DNA of 64,000 nt from Octopus sinensis. Taxonomy: Eukaryota. How positions within the stretch are numbered: the stretch's first letter is position 1; every line of letters starts with the position of its first letter. The position numbers and the translations under genes were made by a program. The stretch is taken from NCBI RefSeq assembly GCF_006345805.1, contig NC_043007.1, positions 72,788,001 to 72,852,000 of the forward strand. The letters are read 5' to 3'. Under the pieces are notes generated by a model. The model had not been told where the DNA came from. It searched no databases and saw only the letters and a list, made by a program, of their open reading frames with translations. Of the stretch, positions 4,619-44,257 are shown in pieces.

Positions 4619-4646
4619 GCACCTTATTATCTTTATAAGACAAGCT
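4619..4646 (+). CDS. Gene A (IL-17R-like) micro-exon, APYYLYKTS(C)
   Basis: Long polypyrimidine tract + CAG acceptor and GTAAGT donor; its phase-1 end joins 7650 in frame (..TSCCQEDL). Confidence 0.6.
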
Positions 4647-5399
4647 GTAAGTATTTAATTAAACTACCTCTCAGACTGAAAAATTATACTAGAATCATAT
4701 TTATCCATATTAATGTACCTCTTTTTTCTTTTATTATGTTGAAACACATGTAGAATTTATCATTTTACATTTTTCAATTATTTCATATCAGCAATCCGAT
4801 CATAACCACCATTGAAACTATTTGATAAACAATTTTGTTAATGTGATGAAAAATAGATCTGGAAATATTGTAGTGATATTAGAGAGAAAAAAGGTAGATG
4901 TGTGCTGGCTCAAAGTGTTGATAGACAGGGGAGCTTCTGCCAGGCCCTTCGCAGGCAATAAACACTGGTACAAATTCTTTTAGTTGGGTAACCACATGTC
5001 TGTAGGTTGGGAATGTATGTCGCATGCAAAGAAATTGAATAGAGTGGTTGAGGTAGTCGGAGTATGTGACAGAATAAATTTAAAATTAGGTGAGAAACAA
5101 AAGCAGTGGTTATATCAACTGAGACACCTCAGTCTGGATTGAGGGATGAGCAGCAAAATAACTATTTCTGTGACATCCGCTTATCATGGTTGGTGACTTT
5201 AATGTACGTGTTGGTACAAAAATGGTAAAGTGGGCATAACAATGGTGATGACATTAGCAAATGGTAACTGACATGAAATTAAACAAAGTACTAGTGTGTG
5301 CATGCATATGTGCACATGTGTGTGTGTGTGTGTGTGTGTAATTTTTTTTATTTGTGAATGAAGGTTAGCAACGGTTTCATGTTAAGAAAAGTAGGAAAA

Positions 5400-6243
5400 T
5401 ATCCTAGTGTCTTAATTCATTCAGTATTCCTCATACAAGATGAGAAAGGGCTAATTTTTATCCCAAGCCATCAATGACAAGAGGAAAGACTGCGCTACAA
5501 AGCTTTTGAACAAACTCGAGCATCCCCTCCTACCAAATATGCTTTGGTTTTTCTCAGACAAGAAAAATTTCTACCAGGATCAGATGGTGAACATACAGAA
5601 CAACCATTGGCCTGCCATGTCCCTAAAACTTGTACTGAGAGTGATAAAAATCAAACATCCAGTCAACATCATGGTGTTTGGAGTGATTACTAGTGATGGT
5701 AGCATTATGCCTCCATTCACCTTCCCACATGGCCTTAGACTCGACACAGAGGCTTACATCAAGTGCCTGGAGGAGGTGGTGCTGCTGCCTTGGGCCAAGA
5801 GGGTGGCTGCTGGAAGACCTTATGTCTAGCAACAGGTCTCTACACCATGCCACACAAGCAGGAGAACCCAGTCATGGCCGTCATACAATTTCTGCAAGCA
5901 CATCACCCCTAACATCTGGTCACCTTACTCCCTAGACTACAAGCCACTTCATTATTATGTGTGGGGTGCAGTTGAGTGAGAGACCAACAAAATTCCTTGT
6001 AACACCAAAGATAAACTGAAGGCAAGGATTATAGCAACATTCACCAACTTAAACAAGGAGACTGTCCAGAAGAGTTGCAAGAGATTCTGAAGTCATCTGG
6101 GGATTTTGTTGAATCAATTTACTCTTTAGTATTTCAAGATATTTTTATGTAATTTTTGGTAAATATATCTATTAAAATGAGATGTCAGTGTTATTTTCAT
6201 TTTTGTGTAATTTAGATGATAATTTATTCACTGCACCCTGTAT
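5400..6243 (+). mobile_element. Decayed Tc1/mariner (maT, DD37D-type) transposase remnant
   Basis: FFSDKKNF..MVFGVITSDG..YV*QQ(D>V)STPCH..WSPYSLDYKPL(D>H)YYVWG; 37 residues between the second and third catalytic positions; ends 'cactgcaccctgta'. Confidence 0.8.
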
Positions 6244-6251
6244 ATGTATAC

Positions 6252-6294
<43 letters not shown>

Positions 6295-7059
6295 TGTCTC
6301 ACTTGTTTTTTCTCCCTAGCCCCCTTTCTATCTCCCTCACATATTTTTTTTCTCTACAGAGAAAAAGAGGAAGAGGTAGTGAGAGAGACTCATATACAAC
6401 CACAGAGAGAGAGAGGGTGGAGGGAAGGAAGGAGACAGTAAGAGAGATAGAAGTATAGAGAGGAACATATATATATATAGATAGAGAGAGAAAGCAGAGA
6501 ACTGGCAGTGACTTCAAAGGAATAAATGTAATGTATAAACTTAGAGAAAGCTGGAGGTGAATTGTGTAATAGGTGTACACGGCATTACAATGAAATAGAC
6601 AGTACATGGATTGCTAGAAATAGGAGCCAATTCACTACCAACTGCCCCCTCCCCACCAATTCATTTTTCGAAAATAAGAGCGGTTATCTGTAGAATGGTT
6701 AAATTAATTTAAATGATACGAAAATCTTGAAATATTATCAACTTTATTTAGTGTTTTTGGCGGTCAACATACTAACAACTTCGCTTTTTATAAGGATAGA
6801 CAAGATAAGATATATATATATATATATATTGGTAATTAGTAAGGGATTTCTCCAAATGTTTACTGGTGAGCTCCCAGTTAAGTATTCAAAATAGGTTATT
6901 CAACAGTTAGTATACAAATCCAGTAATAATTCTCATATGATAAGAATTTCGCGCTATATTCTGTTGGATTATTCTAAATATATTACCTTTAACCTTATAG
7001 GTTTCCTGGTGTATTTAATACCAATGAAAATAATAAAGCTTCAAATAGACCTACACATG

Positions 7060-7270
7060 TTTCTACTGTATCAGGGCGCTCTTACCTCTGCTGGCAACTA
7101 AGGGCCTCTCGCTCAGGATGAAAGGTAGACTGTATGATGCATGTGTGTGAACTGCCATGCTACATGGCAGTGAAGTATTGACCATGAATGCTGATGACAT
7201 GCATAGGCTTGAAAGAAATGAAGCTAGTATGATCCGCTGGATGTGTAATGTCAGTGTGAATACACGACAG
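7060..7270 (+). mobile_element. RTE-clade LINE fragment (RT C-terminal region)
   Basis: Matches 11670-11870 ('aaaggtagactgtatgatgcatgtgtg'). Confidence 0.75.
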
Positions 7271-7271
7271 T

Positions 7272-7560
7272 GTTGGCATATGGCCTAGTGATGAGGGCAT
7301 TGCCCTTATAATTGCAAGATCGTTGATTTGATTCCCAGACCAGGTTGCACATAGTGATCTTGAGAAAAAAACTTCATCTCATGTTACTCTGCCAATACTT
7401 TGACATCTGATGTGTAGCAGAGTGTACACGGGTACATGCAATGTTGATTTGAGGGAGGGAGCGAGCGAACTTATGTACAGCACAAACATTTGATCCTTAT
7501 AAACAAATCCTTTATGCAGAAATTGCTGAACCATCATCTGTCATCTACAACAGGAATGTC
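7272..7560 (+). mobile_element. Degenerate tRNA-derived SINE (family C-like head)
   Basis: 'tggcctagtgatgagggca...ggttgatttgattcccagac' resembles the A/B-box head of the 29978-30275 element. Confidence 0.5.
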
Positions 7561-7649
7561 CATGCATATCCAAGAGCTATTGATGATGTAAAAATTGGGT
7601 TTTTTCTATAATGTCAATAGATTTCAAAGAAATATTTTCCATGTTTCAG

Positions 7650-7778
7650 GTTGTCAGGAGGATTTGGATGTCTTCAAGCCTTTTCCTAATGGAAAGTACC
7701 CAGAAACGCCAGAGATTCTTGAACTAACAGATTTCCTGCAAAATGAAAGAATAGGAATAAAAGCTGTGTGGAATGCAA
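7650..7778 (+). CDS. Gene A exon: CQEDLDVFKPFPNGKYPETPEILELTDFLQNERIGIKAVWNA
   Basis: tttcag acceptor, gtaaga donor, 129 bp, phase 1-1, open reading frame. Confidence 0.75.
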
Positions 7779-8028
7779 GTAAGAAAATTTCTCTTAAATT
7801 CTATATACCATTATGTTATAATTAAATGGTGCATATCCATCAAAAAATGTTTGCTGCATAGACAAAGATTCTATTTCTTAAAGCAAATTAAGAAATTTGG
7901 TTTTTATATAGGTTTTGTACTAAATTTTATGCCAGGTCTAGTTCTTAAGATTTGAATATCATGATGTTTTATCTGTTATTATTGTATAATATCTGATTTA
8001 ATTTTAATATTTTGTACTATATTCCAAG

Positions 8029-8130
8029 ACCTGAATAATAAGAGACAATTCTTTTGCAAGCTGAGTCTAAAGTCTGGTTTTGATTATCAATAAAATTTCT
8101 TTTCTTTTGGAACAAAGACTTTTGTAAAAG
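8029..8130 (+). pseudogene. Candidate gene A exon with an in-frame TAA (NLNNKRQFFCKLSLKSGFDYQ*NFFSFGTKTFVK)
   Basis: AG acceptor, AAG|GTAGGA donor, 102 bp, phase 1-1 compatible with the preceding exon; single stop at 8091-8093. Confidence 0.45.
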
Positions 8131-8279
8131 GTAGGACTGTTCTTGTTATAAATATGTAAATGTTATATCCCTATGCTTCCAATATCATAGTATCATTGCT
8201 ATTGTCAACAACAGATAAAGAATTAAAAAACACGCAACAAACCAACCATCAATATTTCTAATACTCTAACTGTAAACTG

Positions 8280-8600
8280 TACCTTGACTTTGAAGACCAA
8301 ACTACAAACTGCTGACTACGTGTCTGGAACACTGTATCACACAAACAATTCATATAGAAGCTTTATAGTTGTCTTAGTGGTTGGCTTATTGCACCTGCAT
8401 ACCTCTGTACAGCTATATGCACCAATATGTACCCTATACCATGGGTTCTCAGTCTCTGGCCATGATATTTTACCGATGGGGCTCAATAAGTTCTCACCAA
8501 ATTTTCGATATCAGCCAGCTTTCATCTTTGACATTCCCAGGTGTCCACTGTGGAACTGCTGCAATATACATTTTTCAGTTCTATATTTGAGAGATGAAGA
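8280..8600 (-). mobile_element. Gypsy integrase fragment
   Basis: Minus strand reads ILQQFHSGHLGMSKMK..SWPETENPWYRVHI..LFV*YSVPDT. Confidence 0.7.
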
Positions 8601-8619
8601 ATTATGTACATTATTTACA

Positions 8620-9155
8620 TTTGTCTTCATCTTGTTTGTTGTTAACACAAAGTTTCAGCTGATGTACCCTCATTCCTGGGGGAATTTCGAACCTGGGTCC
8701 TCATTCTTAAGATATTTTGCTGATGTTATTATTGTTATTCAGGCCACTGCTTGGAATTGAACTCAGAATCTTGGAGTTAGTAGCCCACGCTCTTAATCAC
8801 TATGCCATATGCCCATGAGCAATTAAGGAGTGAATTTTAGAGCTTATAAATCTAATATTTTCCTATCCTTCCTTAATACCTATTCCTGTATGCTACTCAT
8901 ATCTGCACTAGGTCTACTTAAGAGATTATTATGTCCTAGCATATGTGCTGCCTCTTTTAATTTTCATATTTTCCAGTGGTGTTCTCTATCTATTATTTTA
9001 ACTTCATCCTACAGAGTGAGGTGGTCTCCGGTTTTCCATACATGATCAGTTATACCTGATTTATCAATATCTCTTCATGTCACAGCTTTGTGATATTCCT
9101 CTACCTTTATTTTGAGGGGGTTGCATGTTTTGCCTTTGTATAACCTACTTCAGCT
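8620..9155 (-). mobile_element. Inverted copy of the Penelope-like element 3' end (GIY-YIG plus pLTR)
   Basis: Reverse complement of about 10390-10945 ('ggttatacaaagg..aaacatgc..cccctcaaaata', 'agacctagtgcagatatgagtagc', 'gacccaggttcgaaattcc'). Confidence 0.85.
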
Positions 9156-10945
9156 GCATGTGTACGGCAAGTCTCATAAGTGATGGTAGCTACAGCAAAG
9201 TAAAGAAAGACCCAACTCTGAAAACAGAGAGGAAGTTGTCGTAGATCTTGATCAAGAACAAGGATCACTTTATACCAATGAGGTACAGACAACTGGTTCA
9301 ACACTACAGTAAGCTACCACACGTACGGCTTCCGTAAGATTGACAAGGATGGTATTCCGTTAAAGACCTATAGAGGGCTGTAGGGGTTCAGCATGTCATC
9401 CACTGAGCTGCTTCCTTGTGGATATAATCAGTCCATTAGTAGGAAAGTCAACATCATATGTAAAGTATTCCATCCACTTCACAGAATTGATCAAGGATAC
9501 CCTCATTGGATCAAACCAGATGGTGAGTCTAGATGTGATAAGTCTGTTCACCAAAGTCCCAACTGATGAAGCACTATCAGTGATTCAAGAAAAACTGGTA
9601 ACATACACCTATCTAAAAGAATGCACAAATGTACCAATAGGAGCCTTTATGGAAATGTTGATCTTCTGTATAGAAACTACCTACTTCAGAATGGACACTG
9701 ATATATATTGACAGGAAGAGGGTTTAGCTATGGGTTCGCCATTATCACTGATAATAGGCAATATATACCTGGAATACTTTGAGAATTTGGTTTTAGGATC
9801 AACAACACTAAAACCAACCATATGGCTGCAATATGTTGATGACATCTTTATACTCTGGCCCCACCAGGAAGATGTAAAGTACTGTTAGATCATGTGAACT
9901 CAATAAAGCCATCCATACAGTTCACAATGGAAAAGGAGAAAGACAATCAGCTAGCATTCCTGGACATCATAATAACATGCACCAAATATAGATCCAGAAC
10001 ATCTGTATACTGCAAGCCAACCTTCACTGGTCGATACCTCAACTTCAATTCCCACCATCCAAACAGTGTAAAGAGAGGGATTGCTCAGTGCCCAAAACAT
10101 TGAGCAAAATATATAAGTAGCCATCCTCATACACACCATGAAGAAATGATCAAGCTAAGTAACAATCTATTAAGCAACAATTACCCCCAAAACATACTGT
10201 CCACTCCAATTATGAAGAGAAAAGAGGACCACAGTCTGTCTACCCTATGTGAAAGGCCTCTCTGAAAAAATATGTGACCCCTATGACAGGACAGTATTCA
10301 AGAGTAATACAACACTTTGCAAATATCTCCTTTGAGTAAAACCACCAATAGAAGAGAATATGACCAAAGACTGTGTGTATTCCATTGCATGCAGCTGTGG
10401 CAGGTTATACAAAGGTGAAACATGCCAGCCCCTCAAAATAAGGGTAGATGAACATCACAAAGCTGAGACATGAGGAGATATTGATAAATTGAGTATAGCT
10501 GATCATGTATGGAAAAATGGAGATCACCTCACCCTGTGGGATGAAGTTAAAATAATAGACAGAGAACACCACTAGAAAATACAAAAACTAAAAGAGGCAG
10601 CACATATGTTAGGACAAAATAACCTCCTAAACAGATCTAGTGCAGATATGAGTAGCATATGGAAACTGATATTAAGGAAGGATAGAAAAATATTAGATTT
10701 ATAAGCCCTAAAATTCACTCCATAATTGCCTATGGGCATATAGCGCAGCTACTAACACCAAGATTCCGAGTTCAATTCAAGGCAGTGACCTGAATAATAG
10801 CAATAGCAACTTCAGAAAAATACCTAAAGAATGAGGACCCAGGTTCGAAATTCCTCCATGACACCTGATGAAGGCTGGAGAGTACATCAACCGAAACGTT
10901 GTGTTAACAACAAACAAGATGAGGACAAATATCCATCAAATGTAA
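9156..10945 (+). mobile_element. Decayed Penelope-like retroelement (RT + GIY-YIG endonuclease)
   Basis: DGIPLRPI..SYVKYSIHF..SLDVISLFTKVP..GLAMGSPLS..YVDDIF..VYCKPTFTGRYLNFNSHHP; GIY-YIG CVYSIACSCGRLYKGET..RVDEH. Confidence 0.9.
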
Positions 10946-10959
10946 ATAATAATACACAT

Positions 10960-12690
10960 TTCTGTAATATACTCGGTACCTTTATCTGGTGGTCAATGTG
11001 GAAACTGGGAATAGATGAGTTGTTGGTAAGAGCTGTACAAGCCCTGTACAAGAATGCTGTCAATAAGGTGAGAGGTAGCAACAAGTATAGTGAAGAATTC
11101 TGAATAGAAGTAGGGGTTCACCAAGGATCGGTCCTCAGCCCCCTCTTATTCATTATAGTTCTCCAGGCAATAACAGAAAAATTCAAGATAGGCTGCCCCT
11201 GGGAACTCCTCTTTGCTGATGACCTTTACCTAAAAGCCGAGTCACTGCGAGAATTAGAGACAAAGTTTAGGGTGTGGAAGCAATGTCTAGCATTGAAGAG
11301 CCTTAGGGTTAACCTATCAAAAACCAAAGTCTTCGTAAGTAGGAAGGCTGTCAAATCACAATCCACTTCAGGTAGATGGCCCTGCTCTATCTGTAGAAAA
11401 GGCATGGGTAGAGACTCCATATGATGTACCCAGTGTAAGCTATGGACAGATAAAAGGTGCAGCAATATCAAAGGAAGGTTAACCGAGAAAATAGTTTTTG
11501 TGTGTGGCAGATGCACTGAGGCAATAAACACTGAAATGCTGAAAACACACAGAAAACCGATTCCATTACATGCCAGGAAGAGAAACTAGAAGTAACCAAG
11601 TCTGTAGTGGGGGTGGTTGCTCTGAGAGTGTAGTGGCTAGAATAAGGATTGCCTGGGCAATGTTCAGGGAGCTCCTACCTCTGCTGGCAGCTAAGGGCCT
11701 CTTGCTCAGGATAAAAGGTAGACTGTATGATGCATGTGTGCAAACTGTCATGCTACACAGCAGTGAAACATGGCCATGACTAGAGGACATACGTAGGCTT
11801 CAAAGAAATGAAGGTAGTATGATCTGCTGGATGTGTAATGTCAGTGCGCATGCACGACAGAGTGTAAGTGCCCTGAGAGAAAAGTTGGGCGTGCGTAAGA
11901 AGTATCAGATGTGGTGTGCAAGAGAGACTACTGCAGTGGTATGGTCATATGTTACATATGGATGAGGACAGCTGCATGAGGAAGTGCCACTCCCTAACTG
12001 TGGAAGGAACCTGTGAAAGAGGTAGACTCAGGAAGACATGGGATGAGGTGGTGAAGTATGACCTTTGAACATCGGGCCTCACAGAGGCAATGACAGGAGA
12101 TCAAAACCTTTGAAGATATGCTGTGATTGAGAAGACCTGGCAACTAAAGTGAGATAACAGCCACGCATGTCCAGCCCAGTTAAGAGTACCCCTGATGCGT
12201 CATGTGATATGATATGCTTGAGAAGAAGTGTTGAGTTGGGTAAAACCAATATCGTACCTGTGACCAGTGCCCCCTGACTGGCTCCTATGCCAGTGGCACA
12301 TAAAGAGCACCATCCAAATGTGGCTGATGCCATTACCCACTGACTGGCTCTCATGCTGGTGGCTTGTAAAAAGCACCATCCGAACGTGGCCAATGCCAGT
12401 ACCCACTGATATCACCCATCCTCCACCCCCCATGCTGGTAGCACATAAAAAGCACTATCTGAGTGTCATCGATGTCAGGCTTGCCTGACTGGCACCTGTG
12501 CTGGTGGCATGTAAAAAGCACCCACTACACTCTTGGAGTGGTTGGCGTTAGGAAGGGTATCCAGCTGTAGAAACTTTGCCAGATCAGATTGGAGCCTGGT
12601 GCAGTTGCTGGCTCTCCAGACCTCAGTCAAACCATCCAACCTATGCCAGCATGGAAAACAGACGTTAAACGATGATGATGATGATACATA
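10960..12690 (+). mobile_element. RTE-clade LINE 3' half (RT domain, 3'UTR, (GAT)n tail)
   Basis: IWWSMWKLGIDE..VGVHQGSVLSPLLFIIVL..ELLFADDL; ends 'gacgttaaacgatgatgatgatg'. Confidence 0.88.
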
Positions 12691-12766
12691 CACATGCACA
12701 CATTTATATACATGCGTACATATATAAACATGCATATATACATACATATATATACATACATATTTA

Positions 12767-12797
<31 letters not shown>

Positions 12798-12799
12798 TA

Positions 12800-14000
12800 T
12801 ATTAATTAGAGATAAAACCACTATTAGGCAAATCAAACAGTGAAAAACAAAAGCCAATACATAAAATTAATTTAAAAATATAAAAGTTAAAAATAAAAAA
12901 TTATTTAAATAATTTAAACTTATAAATTTTAAATATATATATATATACAAATATATATATGTATGTATATTTTTATATTTATATATTATTTTATTTATTA
13001 ATTTATTTATTCATCAATTTTTTTTTTATATAAATATCAAAAGTATTAAAAGTTTAATAAAAGATTAAAAAAAAAATATATATATATATATATTATTTTG
13101 TTTTAATAGATTTAACCCATTTAAAAGGATTTAAAATTGAATATGAGTATAAAGATTCTGGTATAAAAATCTGTAGAATTTTGGACTTTTCTGAATTTCT
13201 GAAGAACAAATCCATTAGTAATGTGAGTACAATTTCTATCTTTAAAGAATCTTTCCTTAACCCCAGGAAGGTGGTCATCTACATGGAATATATTACAGAC
13301 CCTGCATGTTGTATTGCTGATTTGCTGGAGATGAAATTATTTTTTAGCCCTGATCTAGCTGACTTTTGATCAGAAGTACTTCAGTCTTGACCACCTTATA
13401 TTTTATTCATAGAGAGTGTTTCTAGGAATACGTTACCAAATACTTTCATTTTAGAAACAGGATAGGAAGTGATTTGAGGGGTATTTAACTTTTATATTTA
13501 GTAGGTTAAGCAACCATATAGAAGTTCTCTCATTAGCTTGGTGAAGTTGAAGTATTTGGTGATGTTGAACTAAATTTTAAGGTTGATTATAAAGATAATG
13601 TTAGAGACAAAGAGACCAATGTGGACTCTTGGAGCGAAAGTTCTATTTTGGATGTTGCTGGAGGAAGGGACTTCTGACGAAATGGTTTGGTAAGTATTTG
13701 TTCCTTTTGAAGGAAAAAATTGGAAAATTAAAGTAAGATGTGAATGTTTTTTGGCTTGGACTGCAGAAAGTAGAAGTTGTTGAGCCTTGAAGGTTATAAA
13801 AGAGCTAATGCAGAAGAAATGTTCTTCATTAGGTTTACATGTGTGTAACATGTATGTAATGGGTCTGCTAGTACATGACTTATTGAAGACTAACATCAAC
13901 AACAGATTTGAAGTAAGCATGTATAAAGAAGAATTATCACATTTCCTTGTATTTAAAAGAGTAGGCATTCTTTACTATATAAATGGTAGAGCCAGAGATA
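12800..14000 (-). mobile_element. Possible highly decayed Penelope-like RT remnant
   Basis: Minus-strand 'IFHVDDHL' (YVDD-like) near 13280 and an AT-rich pLTR-like tail; weak support. Confidence 0.35.
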
Positions 14001-14357
14001 TTGAGAAAAAGTGATTGTGAATTTAATGTTTAATTTGTGATGAAAAAAGTAATTGAGATAGAAGTGAGGAGGATCAGCAAGGTTCTAATAGACACAGGTA
14101 AAAAAACTGTGATTGTTGTTGATAATGATAAATGTCAATGAAGATAAGAAGTGCAAGAAGCTTTGGTATAAGATATTAAAATACCTGCAAAATATGTGTA
14201 GTCACTTCAAATGATACCTAAATTGATATAAATGGACTAACAAAGAATTGTTTACATAATTCTTGTGGAATTAGATGAAGACAAAGAAAAATGATAACAG
14301 GGTAAAATAGCTGAGTGTTTCTATCTTTTAATATAATCAAAATTACTATTATAAAGT

Positions 14358-16561: not shown

Positions 16562-16679
16562 CATAACTTTGAATTTGAAATACATCCTGTAAGAAAAAAT
16601 AAAGAAATTTTGGTTCATCTTTATCCGTTGCCGCAATCTGAAAACAATTATCCTCCTGCTCAGGAAGTTGATACACTCA
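16562..16679 (+). CDS. Gene A exon: HNFEFEIHPVRKNKEILVHLYPLPQSENNYPPAQEVDTL
   Basis: ttgcag acceptor, gtaagg donor, phase 0-1; joins 21126 in frame (DTL-M-CREW). Confidence 0.7.
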
Positions 16680-21125: not shown

Positions 21126-21289
21126 TGTGTCGTGAATGGACAACTTTAATAGATCATAGACTAAAAGAGGACAAGTTAATTGTGGATTTTGAACAAGGAC
21201 CTTCAAAGTGTAACATAAAAATGTATGATATAAGGCTTTATGATGGACAGTTACAAATTATAAAGGCGGTGACTGTCAATTCTTCCAAG
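21126..21289 (+). CDS. Gene A exon: CREWTTLIDHRLKEDKLIVDFEQGPSKCNIKMYDIRLYDGQLQIIKAVTVNSSK (FnIII-like ectodomain)
   Basis: ttttgcag acceptor, AAG|gtttgt donor, phase 1-0, open; VxF..Y.I.L pattern resembles the IL-17R second FnIII-like domain. Confidence 0.8.
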
Positions 21290-22758: not shown

Positions 22759-22818
22759 ATGACCACAAGATTAACCCATGAATTTCATGGAATAAGTCCT
22801 GGAAACTACTCCATAACT
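22759..22818 (+). CDS. Gene A exon: MTTRLTHEFHGISPGNYSIT
   Basis: tttttaag acceptor, gtaagt donor, 60 bp, phase 0-0; FnIII-like 'F.G..PG.Y.I' motif. Confidence 0.8.
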
Positions 22819-24585: not shown

Positions 24586-26164
24586 AATTTGTGGCAGGCC
24601 ATGCCCCCACCACCAAATCTGTCCTCTGTCAAAACTCCCCCACCGTCTTCTCATCATCCACCATCCCATCACCTATGATCACTACCCACTGCAGGCCCCT
24701 CCTCTCTCCTTCCCATGCCTGTTTGCATACTCTCTGTGTTCTAACATACCCATTATACCCCACTACCTTCCACTCCAATTTCTCTTACCATTACTTGCTA
24801 GTCACCCTTTCCTCATCTCTAGATATCTCCTCTTACACTCTTATGGAACATCCCCTTCTCTCTACTCAGTACCACTTACACTAACCCACCACCACCACCA
24901 CTACCTGAGGGTAGGTGCCAAAGCATCTCCAATACCATCTCTCTCTCACTCTGACTGACTGTCTGTCTGTCTCTATCTTTCTCTCCAACTCCATCTCTCC
25001 TCCCTCTCCTCTCTTTTCCTACTGGATTGTCAGGTATCTCCTCTATAGTAAGACACCTCTCTCTATGCCTCTATTATACTCTATCCTCTCAACTGGTACA
25101 AAGCCCCTTCCGATGGTTCTGGTTCTACTCCCTCTCCTAACTGAGAGGTCTTCATCTTGCAAGTTACTCGGTGACCCTGCTGGTGTCAGCACCAGTGCTG
25201 ATGCCACATAAGAAGCATTCAGTACACTCCTCTACTAAGTGATTGGCATTAGGAAGGGCATTCAGCCCTGGAAATCATACCAAATCAGACAATGGAACCT
25301 GTTGCAGCTCTCTGGCTTGCCAGCTCCCATCAACCAGCCAGCTCATGCCAGCATAGAAAACATGTTAAATGATAGTGATCATGATGATCGAAGAAAGGAA
25401 TTAGCTGAACATATTACTATTGTTTCATCACTATTCAATATAACCAATTTTGTATGATATTGTAATCATGTTGGCAACTATTGATTAATTTCCATTAACT
25501 TTCATGTGTTATGTAAGATTTCTTTTATTGCACATTTTAGAAATGATCCCTCAAAAATCCATTCAAAATAATATTAATTTTTAAAGAATTCTGAGGAATC
25601 ATTTACAATGAATTCTGGATTTGATTGATGTTGTTTGGACTCTAACAATACATTTTCCTTATTCTGTTGTCTGAAGAAGCAGAGTTTTAAGACTACTTGC
25701 AATTGGTGTTTGTTTGCTAGGATTATCATCATCCTCATCATCATTTAATGTCTCTTTTTATCCATGCTGGAATGAACCGAATGTTTTGACAGGAACCAAT
25801 GAGCCAGAGGGTTGTGCCAAGCTACAACATCTGCTTTCGCATGGTTTCAACAGGTGCAGGTCCTTTATAATACCAACTACTTTACAAAGTGTGCCAGGTG
25901 ATTTTTTTTTTTTTTGTGGCACCAGCACTTGTGAGATCACAAGTGAGTATAGTATTGAAGGAGGTGAAAGTATGACAGGAGTACAGGAGCAGGTGTGTTG
26001 CTGAAGAGGTGAATACATGTGGCTTCTCCAACTGGAAAGAGAAAGATGTGAGGTTAGGTACAAGGATATGTTATGATGAAAGTATTGAAGCTTCTCTCTC
26101 ATTTGTTTTGTTTGTTTATTTCAATATTTATTCATTGGATGTCTTTTTTCTTTTCTTTTTAAAG

Positions 26165-26267
26165 GTTGAAATATTTGATGAACATCCCTTCAGCAACTGT
26201 ATTTGTGTAAACAGGAAGCAACAGTGTGGTGAAGGATGTTATCGGTCTATATCTAAAGAGTTTACGA
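26165..26267 (+). CDS. Gene A exon: VEIFDEHPFSNCICVNRKQQCGEGCYRSISKEFT (Cys-rich juxtamembrane)
   Basis: Strong polypyrimidine + aaag acceptor, gtaagt donor, phase 0-1; the C-x-C...C...C cluster resembles IL-17R-family ectodomain ends. Confidence 0.85.
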
Positions 26268-29977: not shown

Positions 29978-30275
29978 ATCACCGTGACCAACCAGGCTAT
30001 CAGTTGTTGTTACACATCGCTGGTCACAATGCGCTTCGCATTGTTTTAGCCTTCAAATGACGCCACACCGCTGGCTAAGCGAGCAGGCCAACAGAAGAAA
30101 GAGTGAGAGAAAGTTGTGGTAAAAGAGTACAGCAGGGATCGCCACAACCCCTGCCGGAGCCTTGTGGAGTTTTAGGTATTTTCGCTCAATAAACACTCAC
30201 AACGCCCAGTCTGGGAATTGAAACCGCAACCCTACGACTGCGAGTCCGCTGCCCTAACCACTAGGCCATTGCGCC
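29978..30275 (-). mobile_element. tRNA-derived SINE family C, full length
   Basis: Minus strand 'ggcgcaatggcctagtggttagggcagcggactcgc...ggtttcaattcccagact' has A- and B-box-like motifs and a tRNA-like head. Confidence 0.85.
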
Positions 30276-30279
30276 TACA

Positions 30280-30375
<96 letters not shown>

Positions 30376-30427
30376 CCCGCACGCACGCACGCACGCACGC
30401 ACGCCGCACGCACGCACGCACGCACCA

Positions 30428-30459
<32 letters not shown>

Positions 30460-30495
30460 CACGCACGCACGCACGCACGCACGCACACACACACC

Positions 30496-30536
<41 letters not shown>

Positions 30537-30686
30537 ACATACATATATATATATACATACATATATATATATATACATACATATATATATATATACATAC
30601 ATATATATATATATATACATACATATATATATATACATACATATATATATATATATACATACATATATATATATATATACATACAT

Positions 30687-30718
<32 letters not shown>

Positions 30719-30746
30719 CATACATATATATATATATATACATACA

Positions 30747-30780
<34 letters not shown>

Positions 30781-30790
30781 CACACACACA
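30276..30790. repeat. Compound microsatellite (GCAC)n + (TA)n/(TACA)n
   Basis: Directly visible simple repeats. Confidence 0.98.
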
Positions 30791-31861
30791 AACTAAAACA
30801 TCATGAAGATTCATGAACTGATTTGGAGGACTGTTGCTGAACAGTTGACAAACTTGTTGATATGACTGGTGTCTTGTGCTCCTGCCAGCAAATTTTGAGT
30901 GAGGAATTCCTTTAATTTTTTTCCTCTCTCCTTTGCCTTTCTCTGTCTGTCACTACCTCTCCCTCCTTTGCTCTCTCATAGCTCCCATGTGACCATCGGC
31001 CATCTTTCTTTCTTTCCTTCTGATTCAACTGGATGAATCAGATGCATTCTTATCTGTCTGATGTCCAAGCTTGCTTCTCTGCATTCGCCACCTCATCTTG
31101 TTTAGGATTAGCAGTCCTTCCTGTTTGTTTTCACTGTCCTGTTCTTGTTACCAATTTTGACCCTCTGCAAAATCCCAAATTTTAAAAATTGCTTTGCAGG
31201 AGCAACTGTTTTATCAAAGGCATATTTTGTCATGAACTGCTTGAAATACAGATCAGCCAACAACTGATGAAGGGTCGTTCATTGTGTTTCTTTCGTTGTT
31301 TGCAAAAAAAAAAATAGTTCATATTCCATGTATTCATATTTCATATCTTCGTATTTTATGTTGTTTACGTTCTGTGATGTCCTGTGCCCACATATGCATA
31401 TGTATGTAAGTATGTACAGATACTTCGATCTTGTAAGGATGGACTTGGTGCTAACTTAACTGTATCTATTTTTTATTATATTTTTTTTTTATTATTATTA
31501 TTATTATTATAATTATTATTATTATTAATAGTAATTTTTATTAACTTTTATAGCTTTAGAATCTTATGAACTGTACCACGGATTTAATTATTATTTTTCA
31601 TCTCCATATATGTTAGCCTTTTTTTATATATATATAAAAAAAACTATGCCAAATATGTATAATATCGGTACTTATTGATATTAATATATACACTATATAT
31701 ATTTGTTTTATTTTGTTCTGTTTACCTTCCTTTTTTGTACAAATGTGTATTATATATATAAGTGTAGCTTTATGATGTATAATTTTATATTTTACATTTT
31801 ATATTTTATATTTATATGTATATGATTGTATAATATTTTTCACTATTATAACAAATTTAAT

Positions 31862-33812: not shown

Positions 33813-33853
<41 letters not shown>

Positions 33854-35500: not shown

Positions 35501-35536
<36 letters not shown>

Positions 35537-35545
35537 CTGTTGTGC

Positions 35546-35792
35546 CTGGGGAGAGTCATTCTCTTTTGGTGCCATATAAAGAAGTGGAAATTTTACCAGT
35601 GAGTATGTTTTAACACACTCACCGGTAAAATTTCCACTTCTTTTTTATTTTTCTAAAATTTTCGTTTTGTCTTGCAACCTTTTCAATAGTCATTGACTCT
35701 GTCTGTTACTCCTTTACAAAAAGAAATAAGTGGAAATTTTACTGGTGAGTGTGTTAAATTATAAGGCACCAAAAGAGAATGACTCTCCCCAG
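35546..35792. mobile_element. Palindromic MITE-like element with nested inverted repeats
   Basis: Outer 'ctggggagagtcattctcttttggtgcc' / 'ggcaccaaaagagaatgactctccccag'; inner hairpin 'aagaagtggaaattttaccagtgag...ctcaccggtaaaatttccacttctt'. Confidence 0.85.
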
Positions 35793-37391
35793 AGACACAC
35801 AAACTCAAATAAAGAATCTTGCAAACCAAATCCAAAAATGAAATATATATATAATGGTCTATCAAATGAAAGGCACCGAAATTAAAATCATTAATGAGAT
35901 ATCCATATGTTGTTTATCCAAACACGTTTACAACAATTGGGACTCTAAAGGCCGAAGGATCTGTTGGTTCTATTTCAATTTCACAGGTCAATTAAATACT
36001 GTTAAAAACAAGTTCTTAATATTACGAAGTAGGAATGCTAAGCAGTGATATGTATAAATGCAATGTTATTAGCAATTCAAATATGTTTATGGTATGTTTG
36101 GACTAATAAACAAGCCATTCATTGTGTTGACATTCCCGTTGTTGACAATGTTGTAAACACACCTAGATCTGTTTGCAGCACCCCATTTCCATCGTCATCA
36201 ACGAGAAAGTTTCTTTTCTCCATGACTAAACACAGTGAAGTTCTTAATGTTTCTACAAGAGATCTAAATGGCTAGTCACTTATTGACATCATCAATTCTT
36301 GACAGAGTCCTGTTGTTTGTAGTTATTTCCACAACTGAACACAGTGATTTTGGTTTCAATTTCTAAACAGTGAGTTGGTGTTTAGGACTCTACTAACATT
36401 AATGAGCTTACATTAACAAGCTCATAATTACTTCCTCCCACATAATTACATGCCATCTCAAACTATGTATTTAATATGAAAGCACCAGATATTCAGGCCC
36501 CCTCTACTCACTAGCAACATTTATATATTTTTTTTTACCTTAAATCTATACTAAACTAGGATGTCTGTACAGAACATTAAAAAACTTTTGTGCATTACAC
36601 AAAACATTTTAATGGTTTTCACTAGACATGTAAGAGATAAAAGAACAATGCTTATAAAGGGCTGAACATGCTGGGTCAGTCCCTGACTTTACATTCAGTC
36701 AGAGTAAGGCAATTTCAACAGTAGTTTACAGTAATGTATACAATAAATCATAAACTGTGCCAGCTCAGCTTGGTTTCACAATTCACACTCAAACATAAGA
36801 TCTTTCTTTTTCTATCTGGTTTGCAAGATTCTTTATGTGAGTTCGTGTGTTGAAACAGATTTTGTTATGTCTAAGGAGAGTCATCATGCCAATATAATTA
36901 ACAAACAAAACAATCAGATATTGAACCAGTGTGTGTGTTAATTACATTAGCATGATGACTCCACCTAGACACAACAAAATAAGATACTTACTTTATAATA
37001 AATGATTGAAAACAATGCTTTTGGAATTGTGGCATAGTTATATGTCCTAATCTATTATTTTTGCCTCTGTAAACATCAAAGCATCGTCAAAAACTGGTAC
37101 CAATAATCCAAAAATGAAATTACAACACCATCTTTAAAATATTGAATCGTCTATATTGTGGAAACAAACAGAAAACACTTAAAAATCGAAATAACTGCAG
37201 CATTGATGGCTGCATTTGCTTAAATTTTGTGCTGGGTTATAATTTAAGCATAATGAATTGAAGCTAAGTTCTACTGAACTAATTTAACAATATTTTTGTT
37301 TATTTAAGTTTAATTGACATTTAAAAAAATTATTTGCAATTCATTCTTTGACTTGTATTTTATTTTTTTGTTTTTGGTTCATCATCTACAG

Positions 37392-37538
37392 TGCCATCAC
37401 CAACAAATGTGACTACAGCTAAGATGAGTTTTACAACAACAGAAACTAACAGCCCTTTTAAATTCACCGTATTCCTTGCTATTATTGGTGTTGTGATCAG
37501 TCTGCTACTTTTGGTTCTTAGTTTTTACTGTTACAAAC
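37392..37538 (+). CDS. Gene A Ser/Thr-rich stalk + transmembrane exon: PSPTNVTTAKMSFTTTETNSPFKFTVFLAIIGVVISLLLLVLSFYCYK
   Basis: ctacag acceptor, gtgagt donor, phase 1-1; ~22-aa hydrophobic stretch followed by basic residues (type I TM). Confidence 0.88.
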
Positions 37539-38366
37539 GTGAGTACACAATCTTTGTTCAGACTTATGTGCAAGCAGGATCATTGAATGATGCTTGGTTG
37601 GTGAATGTTGAGGAAGAAAGTGTAGTGTGATCTTTGTAAGAGTGGGAATTTGTTAGAAATGATGAGTCATTGGTAAAAGGAAAGAAAAGAGTGAAAGACA
37701 AAAGTGGTTTGTGGGCCACAACTGAATTGATAGCATGAAGGAAGGAGCTCTGTCAACACATGCCAATATAGTGCAATCTAATGGGAAGCTACTGAGCCAA
37801 AACATAAAAGACAAGTGGAAACGATAAAAGGAAAAATTTCAAAAAAAAAGAAAAGATTCACATGCCAGACTCAGTTAAAAGCTTTATTGATTTTGACATC
37901 ATTCACCAAATTTCTCCAAGACAAGAACCAAATTAGTAATGGGTGAGAAAGGAAAGTAAGTTACTAGTGCATCTGGCTTTACGGAATCCAGGAAACCATA
38001 TTAGTGGTCATTAAGGAAAAAGGAGGTTCAAGATCTTGGAGGATATTGTTGCTGAAAGCTGCATTGATTTTGTTAGAGATGTTATAGGTGGGTGTGCTCC
38101 AAAAATTAGTTTGCTGGGTCAGAGAGGTCACTTTTTATGGAAATGGGATACACTTTAACATGTTTCCAAAGATCAGGATAGATCTCGATAGAGAGGGAGA
38201 GAATCTATTGTTATTCTCACTAGTAACTATAAATTCCATCGATGGAAGAAATAGAAACCTCCAAATACATTTCACAAAGTGATAGTGGTTAATTGAAAAG
38301 GAAATTACAAATAGGTAGAAGCTGACATGTGCACACACATATGTGTGTGTGAGTGTGCATGCATGA

Positions 38367-38435
<69 letters not shown>

Positions 38436-39047
38436 ATCTCACATACACTTAAATTATATTCTGTTATAAAAAAGAATACATTCAATAGTCTGGCCCTAGG
38501 CACCCTGGGCCTGAAAAACTATTGGAATGGTGATGATTGGAATGTCTTTGACTGTAGGTCTAATTTATCACAGCTATCTTACTACTAAACCACAACATTC
38601 TACACCTTTACTAAGGTATACAACTTACTGGCTGATTGGCTACATTAGTGGCTGACTTATACCAGGTGTTGGTAAACAGTCTGGGATGCAGACTAGATTG
38701 GAAATGTTTTTATGTTTTGCAGGCTGTGGGGCATTAAAATGAAACAATGACCATACAGGGCTATAGAAATAGCTTCCTATTTTAATTAATATTTTTCTCT
38801 ATATAAGTCATTAACATAGAATAAAATAAATATTTTCCACTGATGACATAGGGAATAATGAAAAGAACAATTATTTCTTAATACCATAATATCTTTAATT
38901 TTTTCCTTGTTTCAATCATTGGACTTTTTCTAAAGCCTTGTACTTATTCTATCAGTCACTTTTGCTGAAGTGCCAAGTTACAAGGACATAAACAAACCAA
39001 CACCAGTTGTCAAGTAGTGTGTGGGGACACAAACAAACACACACACA

Positions 39048-39097
<50 letters not shown>

Positions 39098-40739
39098 TCA
39101 TGACAAGCTTCTTTCAATTTCTGTTTACCAAATCCACTCATGAGGGCACTGGTTGACCTAGGGCTATAGTGAGACTGAAATTGGAATCATGTGGTTTGGA
39201 AGCAAACTTCTTACTATGCAGCCATGCCTACATCTATCATTTATGTTAATCAAATATTTCTTTGGCTAATCCACAGCAGGCTCTAAAATTTAACACAGAA
39301 TAATGATAGGAACAACTTAGAATCAGAATTAGAACAGTGGAACAGTAGAGTTAATGCAACATTATAGGATTAGAATTGATGGGAGAAATGGAATAAATAA
39401 CAGCCACAATTGTTGTTCTTTAAAGTTATTTAAGACAAATATTTATAATTTCACAAAGGAAACATTGTTACACTTTGATAACAATCCTCACTTCACTTCC
39501 ACCTTCCATACCTGCATGGATGGGTTGGACAGTTCAGTAGGATCCAATGATTCAAACAACTGCACTAAACTCTACTGTCTGTTTTGCTATGGTTTCTACA
39601 GCTGGATGCCCTTCCTAATACCAACCACTTTACAGAATGTACAGGGTGCTTTTCACATGGCACCAGCACTAGTGAGGTCACCAAGTAATTTGCAAGACAA
39701 AAAGCTTCCTTGACTGAGTGGATGTGTAGTAGGGAGGGAAGTGTCTTTAAACCAGGTGTTGAGAGGCCAAAATATCATAGAACAGGCATAGGTATCTTCC
39801 TGTAGAGAAAATACATGGGTACACCACATCATATAAGGGTGGATGAAAGTAGCTCAAAGATGGTGATATAGAGATGTCAGGCTGTACGATCAAAGTACAA
39901 GAAGGTGACTATAAAAGAGAATTGGAAAGGGAGGGTGGGTAAGTTCACAAGAACATGAGAGAGAGTAACAGGCGAATGTAGTGAATGGTGAATAAAGGTG
40001 GAAGGGTAATCAGTGGTAAACATGAGTTTGATGGGTAAGGGAATTAGTAACAGGAGTGACTGAGGAAGAAAGGTGGGTGGCAAATAATAGTGCAGAAAAG
40101 GGTGGAGAACAACAGAATAATAAAACTGTAGATAAATGAGAAATAGGGAGATAATGTGTATAGATGGGTGGGTGATGGAGTAACAGAGAAAAATGGATTT
40201 CAATGGTATGTAATTTTGGATATAGTGAATAACAAAAGTGGGATGAGAAGGTGTTAAGAATGTGATGTGGTAGTCATAAGAGGTGGTAGCTCAAGGTGAA
40301 GAGAGAGAGAGAGAGAGAGATAAATAGTGGAACAGAAAGGGTAAAAATAAAGTGGGAAGGGATGTATCTTAAAGGGAAGTGGTTCTAGGAAAGAGGGATA
40401 ACTAATTGCACAAAAGGGGATGAAATATGTGTGGCTTTGCTGTCATATGATTACAACTGAATGGTTCCGTAGTTAGAAGAGTGATGAAGAGATGGGTGAT
40501 AGAAAAATGAGGTCTGGGGAACTTTATGGAGACAGATTGGGTGCAGGGGCTTTTAGGAAGACAGTTTTGGCATGAAGAACAAGTCTTCTTGAGCATAGCA
40601 AAGCACTATTCAATATGATCTTTTGTTAACTTCTTCAGAGAGGTCAACATCATGAGATTGGCCTTCCCTACTTTATACTACTTCAAGGGTCAGCCTGTTC
40701 CACTAGTGATTCACACTTCCTTATACAACTGCTCTCATC

Positions 40740-41070
40740 CATCCATGGACATGTTTACAAAGTCAGAAAACAGCACAGCTCCCATGACTTTCGGAAACAT
40801 TTTTTCACGCTAGGAGTTGCTGAAGCATGGAACAAACTGCCGGCATCAGTTGTTAGTTGTCGGAGCACTGCATCCTTCAAAACTTCCATGCTTTCTGAGA
40901 TTCCCCAACACTACACCTGGTTTTCTCCCCTCCATACACACGCAAGCATGTATTTGACTCATACACTGTTCACTTCCCAGACATTTGTACATTACTGCAT
41001 ATGCTTTATACGCACTTTTGACAAGTTGTGGTGCACCTGAGCACTGTATATAATAATTTCATTATTATTT
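40740..41070 (+). mobile_element. CR1-clade LINE 3' end, second copy
   Basis: Closely similar to 26470-26770; tail 'aataatttcattattatt'. Confidence 0.85.
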
Positions 41071-41419
41071 GCATCACATGATCATACCAGCATTGTCTTT
41101 TCTCTTGCGCATTACACCTGATTCCTCTTTTCCTCTTTTGTTCTTTTATTTTCTCAACATATTTTGTGTCCCTTATGCACACTGATGTGACACATTCAAT
41201 GGAATATACTTGTTTCATTTCTTTCCAGTCTTCATATACCCTCTACTTTCAGGGCCCTGAAACAATAATCTAATATTGCTGTTTATACAGAATCACTGAG
41301 TTAATAACCTCTTGAATTGTCTCCAGCTTCTCTTTACTTTAGCAGCTATACTTTCAGATCATTCTCCACTGCTTATTAGGTCTCCTAGGTAACAGAAACT
41401 ATTGTCTCTAAGGATAATC

Positions 41420-43140
41420 TTAGATATTTAAGTAAATCTATTTCCTGTCTATTCTGACTTTTTGCAGCTCCTGGACATTTGTCACACACAAAGTCTACTT
41501 TCTCTGTTAACTTTGCTGTGATTCATCTGCTCCACTTGTTTGTACATACCTTACACTGAGTATATCATACAGAATTTCTACTCATGCCTTTTCTACATAT
41601 TGAGCAGGGCCGTTTTTCTGGTGGGAGTAGTGTTCTGTCTGTTTTCCTGCTGACTAGAACTTTGATCTTTGATAAGTTAAATTTTAAGCCCTTCAATTTC
41701 AGGTTTCTCTTCCACATCTGCAATTTCTTTTCTAATTCTGCAACATGTTCAGTTATGAAAATGAGGTCTTCAACTTCTCACAGACAAGTGATCATGTACT
41801 CCTCAGTTATTGTGTGCAGGACTATGATGGTAGGAAGGGACTGATTACTGAGCACTCTGCCTTTTACTTTTGTAGCAGTTGACTATGGTGCTGCTACACC
41901 AGTCATTGGGTATAACTCCTTCATGAACTACCTGATTTATAATACGGATGACTAGACCATAACTTACACTGCCGGATATTTTAAGCACCACAGTAGTGAT
42001 TCCTGATGGGCTGGGGTTTTTTTCTGTCTTCATATCCTTAATTGTTTTATCTACCAGGGTACTGTCAATTCGAATAACTGGTCCCTCTGTTGGGTCAATA
42101 TTTGGCAGACTCTCCTCCTATTCATTCTCCACATTCAACATTCAGCAGTCTTTCATAATGACATCTCCAAGCCTTTTTCCTCACAGACTCATTAAAAACA
42201 AGTGCACCATCATCCATACAGATACATTTCTCACCTATGACATCACAATTTTCTCTCACACACTGTCGTGCAATCCAAAATACTTCAGCTCATTGGTCCT
42301 CACGGTGCTGAATAAAGGCAAACTTCTTTTCTGCTTCTCCTTTGGCTAGATATACCTATCTCCTAGATTCCCTTCTGGCTATCTGATACAGTTCCCTGCT
42401 GCCCCCACTCTTCCAGGCCTGTTTCTTTGCTCTAATGGCCCAGTCTATAGTATTGTTCCACCACCACGTTACCCTAGGTCTGGAAGGGACTTTGCATCAG
42501 CCACAGATTTGGTCTGTGGCACTCGGCAAGCTATCCTGCATGAATTCCCAGTTGCCCTCTATATCACAATTTTGTAGCTGCTCCTCCCTCTCATCAAATT
42601 TCTCAATTAGGATGTCCTTAAATCTCTGACCATTTGAAGGGTCCTTAAGCTTCCAAATCCTTCTTTTACAGATTGGGCTGCATCTTGTCTTCCTTCTGGC
42701 CTGGAATCTAAAGCCGCTAATGACTAGCTTGTGCTGGGGAGTACATTTTTCACTAAGGAGGGTATTTGCATTTGAGAGCAATCATGCATCCTGCTGCCTG
42801 GTGAAAATGAAATCGACTTGGCTAGCAGTGTCACCTGATTGATAGGTTATCCGGTGGGTAGCTGGCTTCTTGAAGTTGGTGTTGCAGATCCAAAGGTTAT
42901 TCACATCACAGGACTCCAGTAGTCTTGTTCTCTCTTCGTTTTGGGAACTGATTCCATTGCCCCCATGTACACCATGGTAGATACCAGGCTGCTGCCCAAC
43001 ATACCCATTGAAATACCCAGCCATGAAGAGGAGATCATTGTCACATGTCTTGAAGGTAGCCTGCAGAAGAATATCATAAAAGTGGTCCTTCTGTTCATTT
43101 CACAAGCTCACTTGTGGGGCATAGGCAGGTATAATTGTAG
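41420..43140 (-). mobile_element. Decayed RTE LINE ORF2 fragment (AP endonuclease and start of RT)
   Basis: GYFNGYVG..YHGVHGGNG..NEERTRLLESCD..ICNTNFKKP..ITYQSG..SQVDFIF; HKLVISGF; PSPSGITT..NDWCSSTIVNCYK. Confidence 0.88.
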
Positions 43141-44026
43141 CTATACTATTCTGCAAGACTAACCTGAGCTTAATAATGAAGGAGCAGAACCAGTAAGGGA
43201 TGGGTAGTTAGGAGTTCATGATACTGTGGTTTGTGTTTGTATGTGTGTTTGTGCATGGATGAGTATGATAGGTGGGTAGTAAAGAAGGGTACCTGTGCTC
43301 AATGTATAATAGTGTTGAGGAATATAAGGAAGGATGGTACGTTAGAAATATATTTGAAAATTGAAGGTGAGATGGTATGTATGCCAATATGTGTGTGTGA
43401 AGTGAATGGTAACAGAAGATTGAATCTATAAGAAGTCAACTGTGTAAGTGTGTCTTTGTGTTTGTTCCCCTCCGTCTCTTGGGAACTGGTGTTGGTTTAT
43501 CTAGATCCCTGCAATCTAGTACTGTGGCAAAAGAGATTGATAGAATAAGTACCACACTTAAAAATACCTATTGAGATTGATTTGTTTGACTAAAACCTTT
43601 CAAGGCACTGTCCCAGCATGGCCACAGTCCAATAACTGAAACACATAAAAAGATCAATTTAAGAAGTAGGTGACTAGGTTAGTAAAGTGAAGTGTCTTTG
43701 AACATGGCTTAGAGCTACTATTATTAGGAATGAACTATTTCTCTAGAAACTCAATAACCTTTGTTTAAATAACTGATATCAGATCAAGAGTACCCAGGCT
43801 TGTTTTTTAAGGTCGCATTTAAAAGTTCTTTACTTCCTCTGTAGATGATTATATCTATTTTGAACTCTTGCTTTTCTGAATCCAAGTTTAATTGTGGTTG
43901 GTTTTGATATTTTAATTTTCTGGTGTCATGTAAGTTGTGTTGATCTATTATTTAGTTTAAAAATTGAATCTTTTAATTCTAATATATTGATATTTTATAA
44001 TTGATTCTGTGAATTTATAATTTCAG

Positions 44027-44257
44027 GGTCATTCCAAGAGAAAAGAGAGTTATTTCATATTAAAGACCCTTCTTACCACAAAAGTCTGAATTTATAATTC
44101 TTGTTTACTCCAAAGCTCTTCACAAAAGAATTTAGGCTTGGAAAAACAACCAAGATTACATATTACATAATTTTTTTTAAAAGAGGATAACTCAGCACTT
44201 TTGACAGCTTCCTTTTCCGGAGAACTTAAAGCAAGCAATAAACTTATAATTTCTAAT
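44027..44257 (+). pseudogene. Gene A terminal SEFIR exon, disrupted
   Basis: 'gtgaatttataatttcag|GG TCA TTC CAA GAG AAA AGA' aligns to gene B 'gtgaatttatattttcag|GA ACA CTC CAA GAG AAA AGA'; ~112-nt deletion after TAC CAC; then 'QKSEFIILVYSKALHKRI*AWKNNQDY'; homology ends near 44257. Confidence 0.85.

Follow-up and report, generated by a model that had tools for sequence, protein, structure and literature searches.

Octopuses and other marine molluscs have greatly expanded families of IL-17 ligands, and the restraint of signalling by these ligands is the question at stake at the locus described here. Octopus bimaculoides has 31-36 IL-17-like genes (PMC8353272). We analysed a stretch of 64,000 nucleotides (nt) of the Octopus sinensis genome (NCBI RefSeq assembly GCF_006345805.1, contig NC_043007.1, positions 72,788,001 to 72,852,000 of the forward strand), referred to below as the window; positions are counted from its first nucleotide. 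A first-pass annotation had proposed that a gene on the + strand, here gene A, could encode a membrane-anchored IL-17 receptor without the SEFIR signalling domain, a candidate decoy, or could have become a pseudogene recently. What does gene A encode, and has it been retained or is it decaying? The anatomy is settled and agrees with the structural part of that proposal: gene A encodes a membrane-anchored, SEFIR-less IL-17-receptor-like chain that goes back to one old frameshifting deletion, and the truncation is common to O. bimaculoides. The gene belongs to a tandem cluster of octopus IL-17-receptor-like (ILCR1-type) genes, among which it is a truncated paralogue.

Exon structure and reading frame of gene A

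The gene A frame runs through nine exons on the + strand from 4619 to 44097, with AG acceptors and GT donors throughout, compatible phases and 310 open codons, and it is closed by a TAA at 44095-44097. The features of the locus are as follows.

4619-4646, + strand: exon 2, 28 nt, APYYLYKTS, start of D1; AG/GT borders, fitting phase; 100% nt identity to positions 24682-24709 of the O. bimaculoides locus L001
7650-7778, + strand: exon 3 (D1); 95.3% nt identity to the O. bimaculoides orthologue
13110-13222, + strand: exon 4 (D1); 98.2% nt identity to the O. bimaculoides orthologue
16562-16679, + strand: exon 5 (end of D1; HNFEFEI...); 95.8% nt identity to the O. bimaculoides orthologue
21126-21289, + strand: exon 6 (start of Ig_ILCR1, D2; (M)CREW...SSK); Pfam PF23608, E=3e-20
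22759-22818, + strand: exon 7 (D2); codon 22795-22797 is AGT (Ser), Cys in the O. bimaculoides orthologue and the nine other cephalopod paralogues aligned
26165-26267, + strand: exon 8 (end of D2); holds the invariant CxC...C...C motif
37369-37370, + strand: ancestral acceptor of the transmembrane exon; AG ancestrally, TG in the window (four-locus comparison)
37392-37538, + strand: exon 9 (stalk and transmembrane segment); hydrophobic run from about 37463; acceptor AG in frame, 18 nt downstream of the ancestral one
44027-44097, + strand: last exon as translated, (R)SFQEKRELFHIKDPSYHKSLNL and TAA; 5' end of the former SEFIR exon, with the deletion junction at 44079
44098-44256, + strand: untranslated remnant of the SEFIR exon, QKSEFIILVYSKALHKRI*AWKNNQDYI ... 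FLKEDNSALLTASFSGELKASNKLII, with a TAG and indels

The six downstream exons (16562 to 44097) alone give 220 codons and the TAA. They had been described in the first-pass annotation as open and phase-compatible, and all the peptides quoted for them were found on the + strand at their positions. The three upstream exons (4619-4646, 7650-7778 and 13110-13222) splice in phase onto these six. The codons split at junctions are those of M(CREW), M(PSP) and R(SFQ), and across the last junction the product reads YKR from the transmembrane exon followed by SFQEKRELFHIK. The splice sites had been called canonical; all are AG/GT, but the acceptor of the transmembrane exon at 37390-37391, canonical as it is, is not the ancestral one. 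The signal-peptide exon lies outside the window, as had been supposed, and synteny with O. bimaculoides places it ∼7 kb before the first nucleotide of the window; the orthologue in O. bimaculoides has the signal peptide MEQFLTALILTLLFIHNSAEC, encoded 14.6 kb upstream of exon 2. The predicted product thus consists, in order, of a D1-like domain, Ig_ILCR1 (D2), a stalk and a transmembrane helix, and it ends in a tail of 24 residues.

The closest protein is LOC106875973 of O. bimaculoides (P0001, XP_014779803.1, UniProt A0A0L8GLV1, 340 residues), named "ILCR1 Ig-like domain-containing protein". Its amino acid identity to gene A is 85% (MAFFT global alignment), and synteny between the window and the O. 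bimaculoides locus (L001) extends through the introns, which supports orthology. A chance origin of the nine-exon frame was rejected, since each exon is collinear with LOC106875973 and the introns are syntenic. The two genes have the same exon structure and the same deletion-derived short tail (SFQEKRE.FHIKD in common). They differ in that LOC106875973 uses the ancestral upstream acceptor of the transmembrane exon, which adds six stalk residues, and keeps a D2 cysteine, whereas gene A does neither; the C-termini diverge through a 1-nt indel (..DHSTTKV* in LOC106875973 vs. ..DPSYHKSLNL* in gene A).

One further segment of the intron after exon 3 had been singled out as a possible "stop exon".

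8029-8130, + strand: AG...GT-bounded segment of 102 nt, with stops in all three frames

It was identical to O. bimaculoides at 98 of 102 positions (96% vs. an intron mean of 92.5%; not significant). As an obligatory exon it was rejected: the segment has no place in the exact exon map of the O. bimaculoides protein, and no sign of the obligatory inclusion that had been considered was seen, the segment being outside the orthologue's model. It could be a poison exon or nothing.

Family identity and domains

A Pfam search of the gene A product returned full-length Ig_ILCR1 (PF23608) at E=1.6e-20 and 3.2e-20 (73-74 bits vs. a cut-off of 27) and no match to SEFIR. The Pfam D1 models were below significance on gene A itself. 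A profile of the cephalopod family, with the orthologue as its first row, matched human IL-17RA D1 (residues 22-190) in the PDB at E ∼2e-5 and the human IL-17RA SEFIR domain at E=3e-11. For the O. bimaculoides orthologue, AlphaFold gave a model with a mean predicted local distance difference test score (pLDDT) of 82, mostly above 90 in the ectodomain; two beta-sandwich domains are followed by a disordered stalk, then by a helix at 294-327 and a tail that is again disordered. Foldseek against the PDB ranked IL-17RA best (E=1.5e-10) and IL-17RB next. The tandem domains for which structure prediction had been suggested as a check therefore appear in the orthologue model, along with the transmembrane helix. 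The single transmembrane segment is the hydrophobic run FTVFLAIIGVVISLLLLVLSFYC within exon 37392-37538, helix 294-327 in the orthologue model.

Relatives were collected by an exhaustive HMMER search and two word-based searches, the representative search being run with the orthologue P0001 as query. They make up a small cephalopod family, most members of which have 550-570 residues and a SEFIR domain; remoter bivalve and annelid relatives carry ILCR1_N, Ig_ILCR1 and SEFIR. Because of the Pfam result, the profile matches to IL-17RA, and the fold and Foldseek ranking of the orthologue, we conclude that the cephalopod family is a genuine IL-17-receptor family, of which gene A has the D1, D2 and transmembrane parts. 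Judged from sequence, gene A is an IL-17R/ILCR member by its ectodomain and transmembrane segment and not by a SEFIR domain.

The intact paralogues LOC106873178 (P0027, 566 residues) and LOC106875974 (P0028), O. sinensis LOC115217573 (P0038) and Argonauta P0004 have the same ten-exon layout with D1, D2, stalk and transmembrane segment, but end in a SEFIR exon of ∼240 codons, which gene A does not. P0027 and the gene A orthologue share 71% identity. The O. vulgaris locus L002 (OX597824.1:34514866-34584145; models P0002 and P0031), the introns of which align at 80-90%, was considered as the gene A orthologue and rejected; it is the orthologue of the intact LOC106873178. In its annotation the intact paralogue is broken up into P0002, in which a transposon gag is joined to D1 and half of D2, and P0031, which holds the transmembrane segment and SEFIR; the second half of D2 (55816-55924 in L002) is unannotated.

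Loss of the SEFIR domain

The tail exon of gene A represents the 5' end of the former SEFIR exon, as 44027-44079 aligns with the start of the SEFIR exon of a neighbouring paralogue on the - strand, gene B. At 44079 there is a frameshifting deletion of 112 nt: gene B positions 59096-58986 are missing from gene A, which resumes at QKSEFIILVYSK in another frame and reads KSLNL and then TAA. About 17 first codons of the SEFIR exon remain in frame, vs. the ∼240-codon exon of the intact paralogues, and the last ∼125 codons are missing beyond the TAG and several indels of the remnant. The heavily damaged SEFIR exon of the first-pass annotation thus coincides with the tail exon, which the deletion disrupted, and the asymmetry that this annotation had stressed between intact ectodomain and transmembrane exons and a wrecked SEFIR exon is real. 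The orthologous locus of O. bimaculoides has the same deletion and the same remnant; since both species share it, the loss of SEFIR is older than the O. sinensis/O. bimaculoides split.

The short product might instead be an annotation artefact, with the transmembrane exon actually spliced to an intact SEFIR exon at another place. Fragmented models are indeed common in this family, as in the O. vulgaris pair P0002 and P0031, which are halves of one gene. However, the only match of tblastn with four SEFIR-bearing paralogues on the window's + strand was the broken remnant, and the 20 kb downstream hold no further + strand SEFIR exon; the sole SEFIR exon of intact length in the window is on the opposite strand, and the O. 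bimaculoides locus aligns through the same remnant. We consider an artefact hardly credible.

The following course of events is proposed. A 112-nt deletion in the last (SEFIR) exon, before O. bimaculoides separated from O. vulgaris and O. sinensis, would have shifted the frame and placed a stop 22 codons into the former SEFIR exon. Nonsense-mediated decay spares transcripts whose stop is in the last exon. By this established rule the gene A mRNA, with its stop in the terminal exon, should escape decay. The predicted protein would carry a signal peptide, an IL-17RA-like D1, an Ig_ILCR1 D2, a stalk, one transmembrane helix and a tail of ∼24 residues, and would be unable to recruit SEFIR adaptors.

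Frame survival and conservation of D1

No disabling mutation was found in the remaining coding sequence, within 310 codons in the window or 340 in O. bimaculoides. Between gene A and its orthologue there were no stops and one 1-nt indel, confined to the last ∼8 codons; 17 of the 18 splice dinucleotides were unchanged and the lost one was replaced in frame. Under neutral drift 2.2-2.3 new stops would be expected in the 933-nt coding sequence from the observed noncoding spectrum (probability of none ∼0.10). For frameshifting indels the expectation was 5.1 (probability of none 0.006, of one or fewer 0.037) at intron rates matched for low-complexity content, an intron-based figure that may overstate the exonic rate. 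The exons overall were 94.0% identical to O. bimaculoides at the nt level. Divergence of the D1 exons was 3.4% vs. 7.5% in the introns, taken as neutral (P=4.5e-4), and the rate of nonsynonymous substitution (dN) in D1 was under half the intron rate (ratio ∼0.46). Frame survival and D1 conservation are arguments for a continued usefulness of the truncated gene after the two species separated. Pseudogenisation of a very recent kind, one of the options left by the first-pass annotation, is unlikely, as the frame has outlived the neutral expectation and the D1 exons are conserved.

The ratio of dN to synonymous substitution (dS) was compared with that of an intact paralogue, paralogue C, in the O. 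vulgaris locus L002 vs. the O. bimaculoides locus L003 (LOC106873178, P0027). Noncoding divergence between the window and O. bimaculoides was p=0.0754 over 23.4 kb, and that of the paralogue C pair was 0.0745; the two pairs therefore span the same time.

gene A, 306 codons: dN 0.073, dS 0.085, dN/dS 0.87
gene A, 286 four-way columns: dN 0.0625, dS 0.0596, dN/dS 1.05
intact paralogue C, same 286 columns: dN 0.0665, dS 0.1075, dN/dS 0.62

The nonsynonymous and synonymous counts of gene A and paralogue C were not significantly different (Fisher p=0.28). Because the intact paralogue has the same dN, fast ectodomain evolution is a family trait and dN/dS is not decisive. The comparison of ectodomain dN/dS that had been suggested as a check was accordingly split in its outcome: the overall value near 1 speaks against constraint, the conservation of D1 speaks for it, and dN is equal in paralogue C.

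A retained chain or a drifting pseudogene

On this evidence our leading interpretation, held at about even confidence, is that gene A is a retained non-signalling chain, a decoy or a dominant negative. The architecture is of the decoy type, with the predicted ligand-binding ectodomain and the membrane anchor kept and the signalling domain absent, and on sequence grounds a decoy role is plausible. If gene A is expressed, its most likely role would be that of a chain which, without signalling, binds one or several of the numerous IL-17-like ligands of octopuses; alternatively it may pair with signalling chains and so dampen their output.

Several observations weigh against retention, in addition to the possible overstatement of the indel rate mentioned above. 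The pairwise dN/dS of 0.87-1.05 is not distinguishable from 1, and 43 of the 51 coding differences are nonsynonymous. D2 exons diverge by 7.0%, about the neutral rate, and the stalk and transmembrane exon by 10.4%, which exceeds that rate, vs. 5.6% in paralogue C. The window copy has lost the ancestral acceptor of the transmembrane exon, and the AG 18 nt downstream keeps the frame at the cost of six stalk residues. Codon 22795-22797 encodes Ser in the window and Cys in the O. bimaculoides orthologue and the nine other cephalopod paralogues aligned (10 of 10); from co-occurrence in the alignment, the lost D2 cysteine was probably the partner of the cysteine in MCREW. An annotated protein for gene A exists in O. 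bimaculoides only (RefSeq XP_014779803; also UniProt/EukProt), and no gene A protein model was found in O. sinensis or O. vulgaris, both of which are annotated.

Gene A could then be a pseudogene, transcribed or not, that has drifted since the loss of SEFIR and kept its frame by luck, through a lower exonic indel rate or because constraint ended only recently. The overall dN/dS and the large share of nonsynonymous differences, the neutral rate of the D2 and transmembrane exons, the two lesions of the window copy, the frameshift tolerated in the tail and the missing annotated proteins would all fit such a history. The absence of stops, together with that of frameshifts outside the last 8 codons, has, however, a joint probability of ∼1e-3 at intron rates; D1 is significantly conserved; and the high dN is shared with the intact paralogue. 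Both lineages have moreover changed equally: polarised with the paralogue outgroup, derived nonsynonymous changes numbered 16 and 15 on the two branches, with no lineage-specific acceleration. A drifting pseudogene is kept in play by the dN/dS near 1, the two mild lesions and the missing annotations, and we regard it as possible but less probable than retention of a non-signalling chain.

Gene B and the possibility of a two-chain receptor

Gene B is the tail-to-tail neighbour of gene A, and two of its features are relevant here.

58449-59152, - strand: SEFIR exon of gene B, interrupted in frame by a TAA at 58893-58895; the remainder of the gene is beyond the window end
58831-59776, - strand: inverted copy of 43415-44256, covering the start of the SEFIR exon and the intron before the last exon; 78% identity

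The intron part of the duplication (43415-44026 vs. 59776-59153) is likewise 78% identical. The 3' ends of genes A and B share more recent history than their ectodomains (∼44-54% amino acid identity). Apart from the TAA, which adjoins a net loss of 15 nt, the SEFIR exon of gene B is open over its full length. At the stop the window reads DYINF*N FLTV vs. DYINFLKEDNSALLTV in O. vulgaris and O. bimaculoides. Up to the TAA, the translation agrees at each of 86 residues with the C-terminus of O. sinensis LOC115216983 (P0036, 204 residues), a model that ends exactly at this TAA. A very recent truncation within SEFIR thus seems to have affected a second receptor of the cluster, unless the stop is an assembly error in a T/A run.

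The gene B-type proteins of O. bimaculoides and O. vulgaris (P0005, P0014, P0025 and P0037) have a signal peptide, D2, a transmembrane segment and SEFIR without D1, a layout that mirrors that of gene A (D1 present, SEFIR absent). Vertebrate IL-17 receptors act as heteromers. Gene A might by analogy be a co-receptor and not an inhibitor, that is, the ligand-binding half of a two-chain receptor, supplying D1 and signalling via a partner that has SEFIR, for instance gene B, which is D1-less, or another paralogue. The domain content of the gene B orthologues and the tail-to-tail position of the two genes are in line with this, but the premature TAA in the gene B SEFIR exon of the window, which matches the 204-residue O. 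sinensis model, is not, and the complementarity of A and B could be the coincidence of two decaying duplicates. We judge a co-receptor role unlikely. In its most specific form, genes A and B would be the halves of a split IL-17 receptor, with A (D1-D2-transmembrane) capturing the ligand and a B-type chain (D2-transmembrane-SEFIR) signalling; this is a more doubtful proposition still. If it were true, loss of either half in different octopus species would tune the response to the expanded IL-17 repertoire.

Surroundings of the genes

The window is AT-rich, repeat-laden animal DNA. Fragmented reverse-transcriptase open reading frames (Pfam RVT_1, E 1e-11 to 2e-4) are found on the + strand at 1118-1898, 9712-9885, 11104-11421 and 62382-62738, that is, upstream of exon 2, in gene A introns and at the far window end. 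At 165-326 there is a gag-like piece similar to the N-terminus that was wrongly joined to the O. vulgaris model P0003. The large intron before the transmembrane exon contains a long compound microsatellite at 30176-30813 (ACGC/ATAC-type, translating as ...THARTHAR... and ...YIYIYI...). Between genes A and B, 44000-50000 is a very AT-rich block (24-28% GC), and the internally repeated units at 46744-49513 recur upstream of the O. bimaculoides gene (L001 552-1622).

Relation to known receptors

Gene A resembles vertebrate IL-17RA and IL-17RB and C. elegans ILCR-1 and ILCR-2 in the D1-D2 fold and as a single-pass membrane protein; its identity to IL-17RA is only ∼12-16%. It differs from all of them in having no SEFIR and hence no docking of Act1/CIKS-type adaptors. 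Soluble isoforms of mammalian IL-17RA and IL-17RC are secreted products of alternative splicing of intact genes. They are also ectodomains without signalling, whereas gene A is a separate locus and membrane-anchored. In the IL-1 system, the membrane decoy receptor IL-1R2 has a ligand-binding ectodomain, a transmembrane segment and a short tail without a STIR-type signalling domain, and its decoy activity has been demonstrated. IL-1R2 may be the nearest functional model, gene A being likewise a germline-encoded paralogue with ectodomain, transmembrane segment and short tail. It belongs to another receptor family, however, and is a demonstrated decoy where gene A is only a candidate.

Work on invertebrate IL-17 has dealt with ligand expansions in octopus and bivalves, and receptors have been defined by SEFIR (PMC8353272). 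Surveys that select on SEFIR miss SEFIR-less paralogues by design. An experimentally truncated IL-17 receptor perturbs signalling in the sea urchin (PMC5457136), and ILCR-1 and ILCR-2 of C. elegans both signal (PMC7190641); none of these three papers describes a natural SEFIR-less receptor gene. Our literature search on this locus, on cephalopod IL-17 receptors and on SEFIR-less invertebrate decoys returned nothing specific.

Should gene A turn out to be just a duplicate in slow decay, it would still provide a case of domain loss that is dated and traced to one deletion, in a receptor cluster that evolves fast. If it is a retained non-signalling chain, it would be an IL-17 counterpart of the IL-1R2 decoy, common to two octopus species and with no invertebrate example found in the literature, and it would offer a concrete handle on the negative regulation of cephalopod innate immunity.

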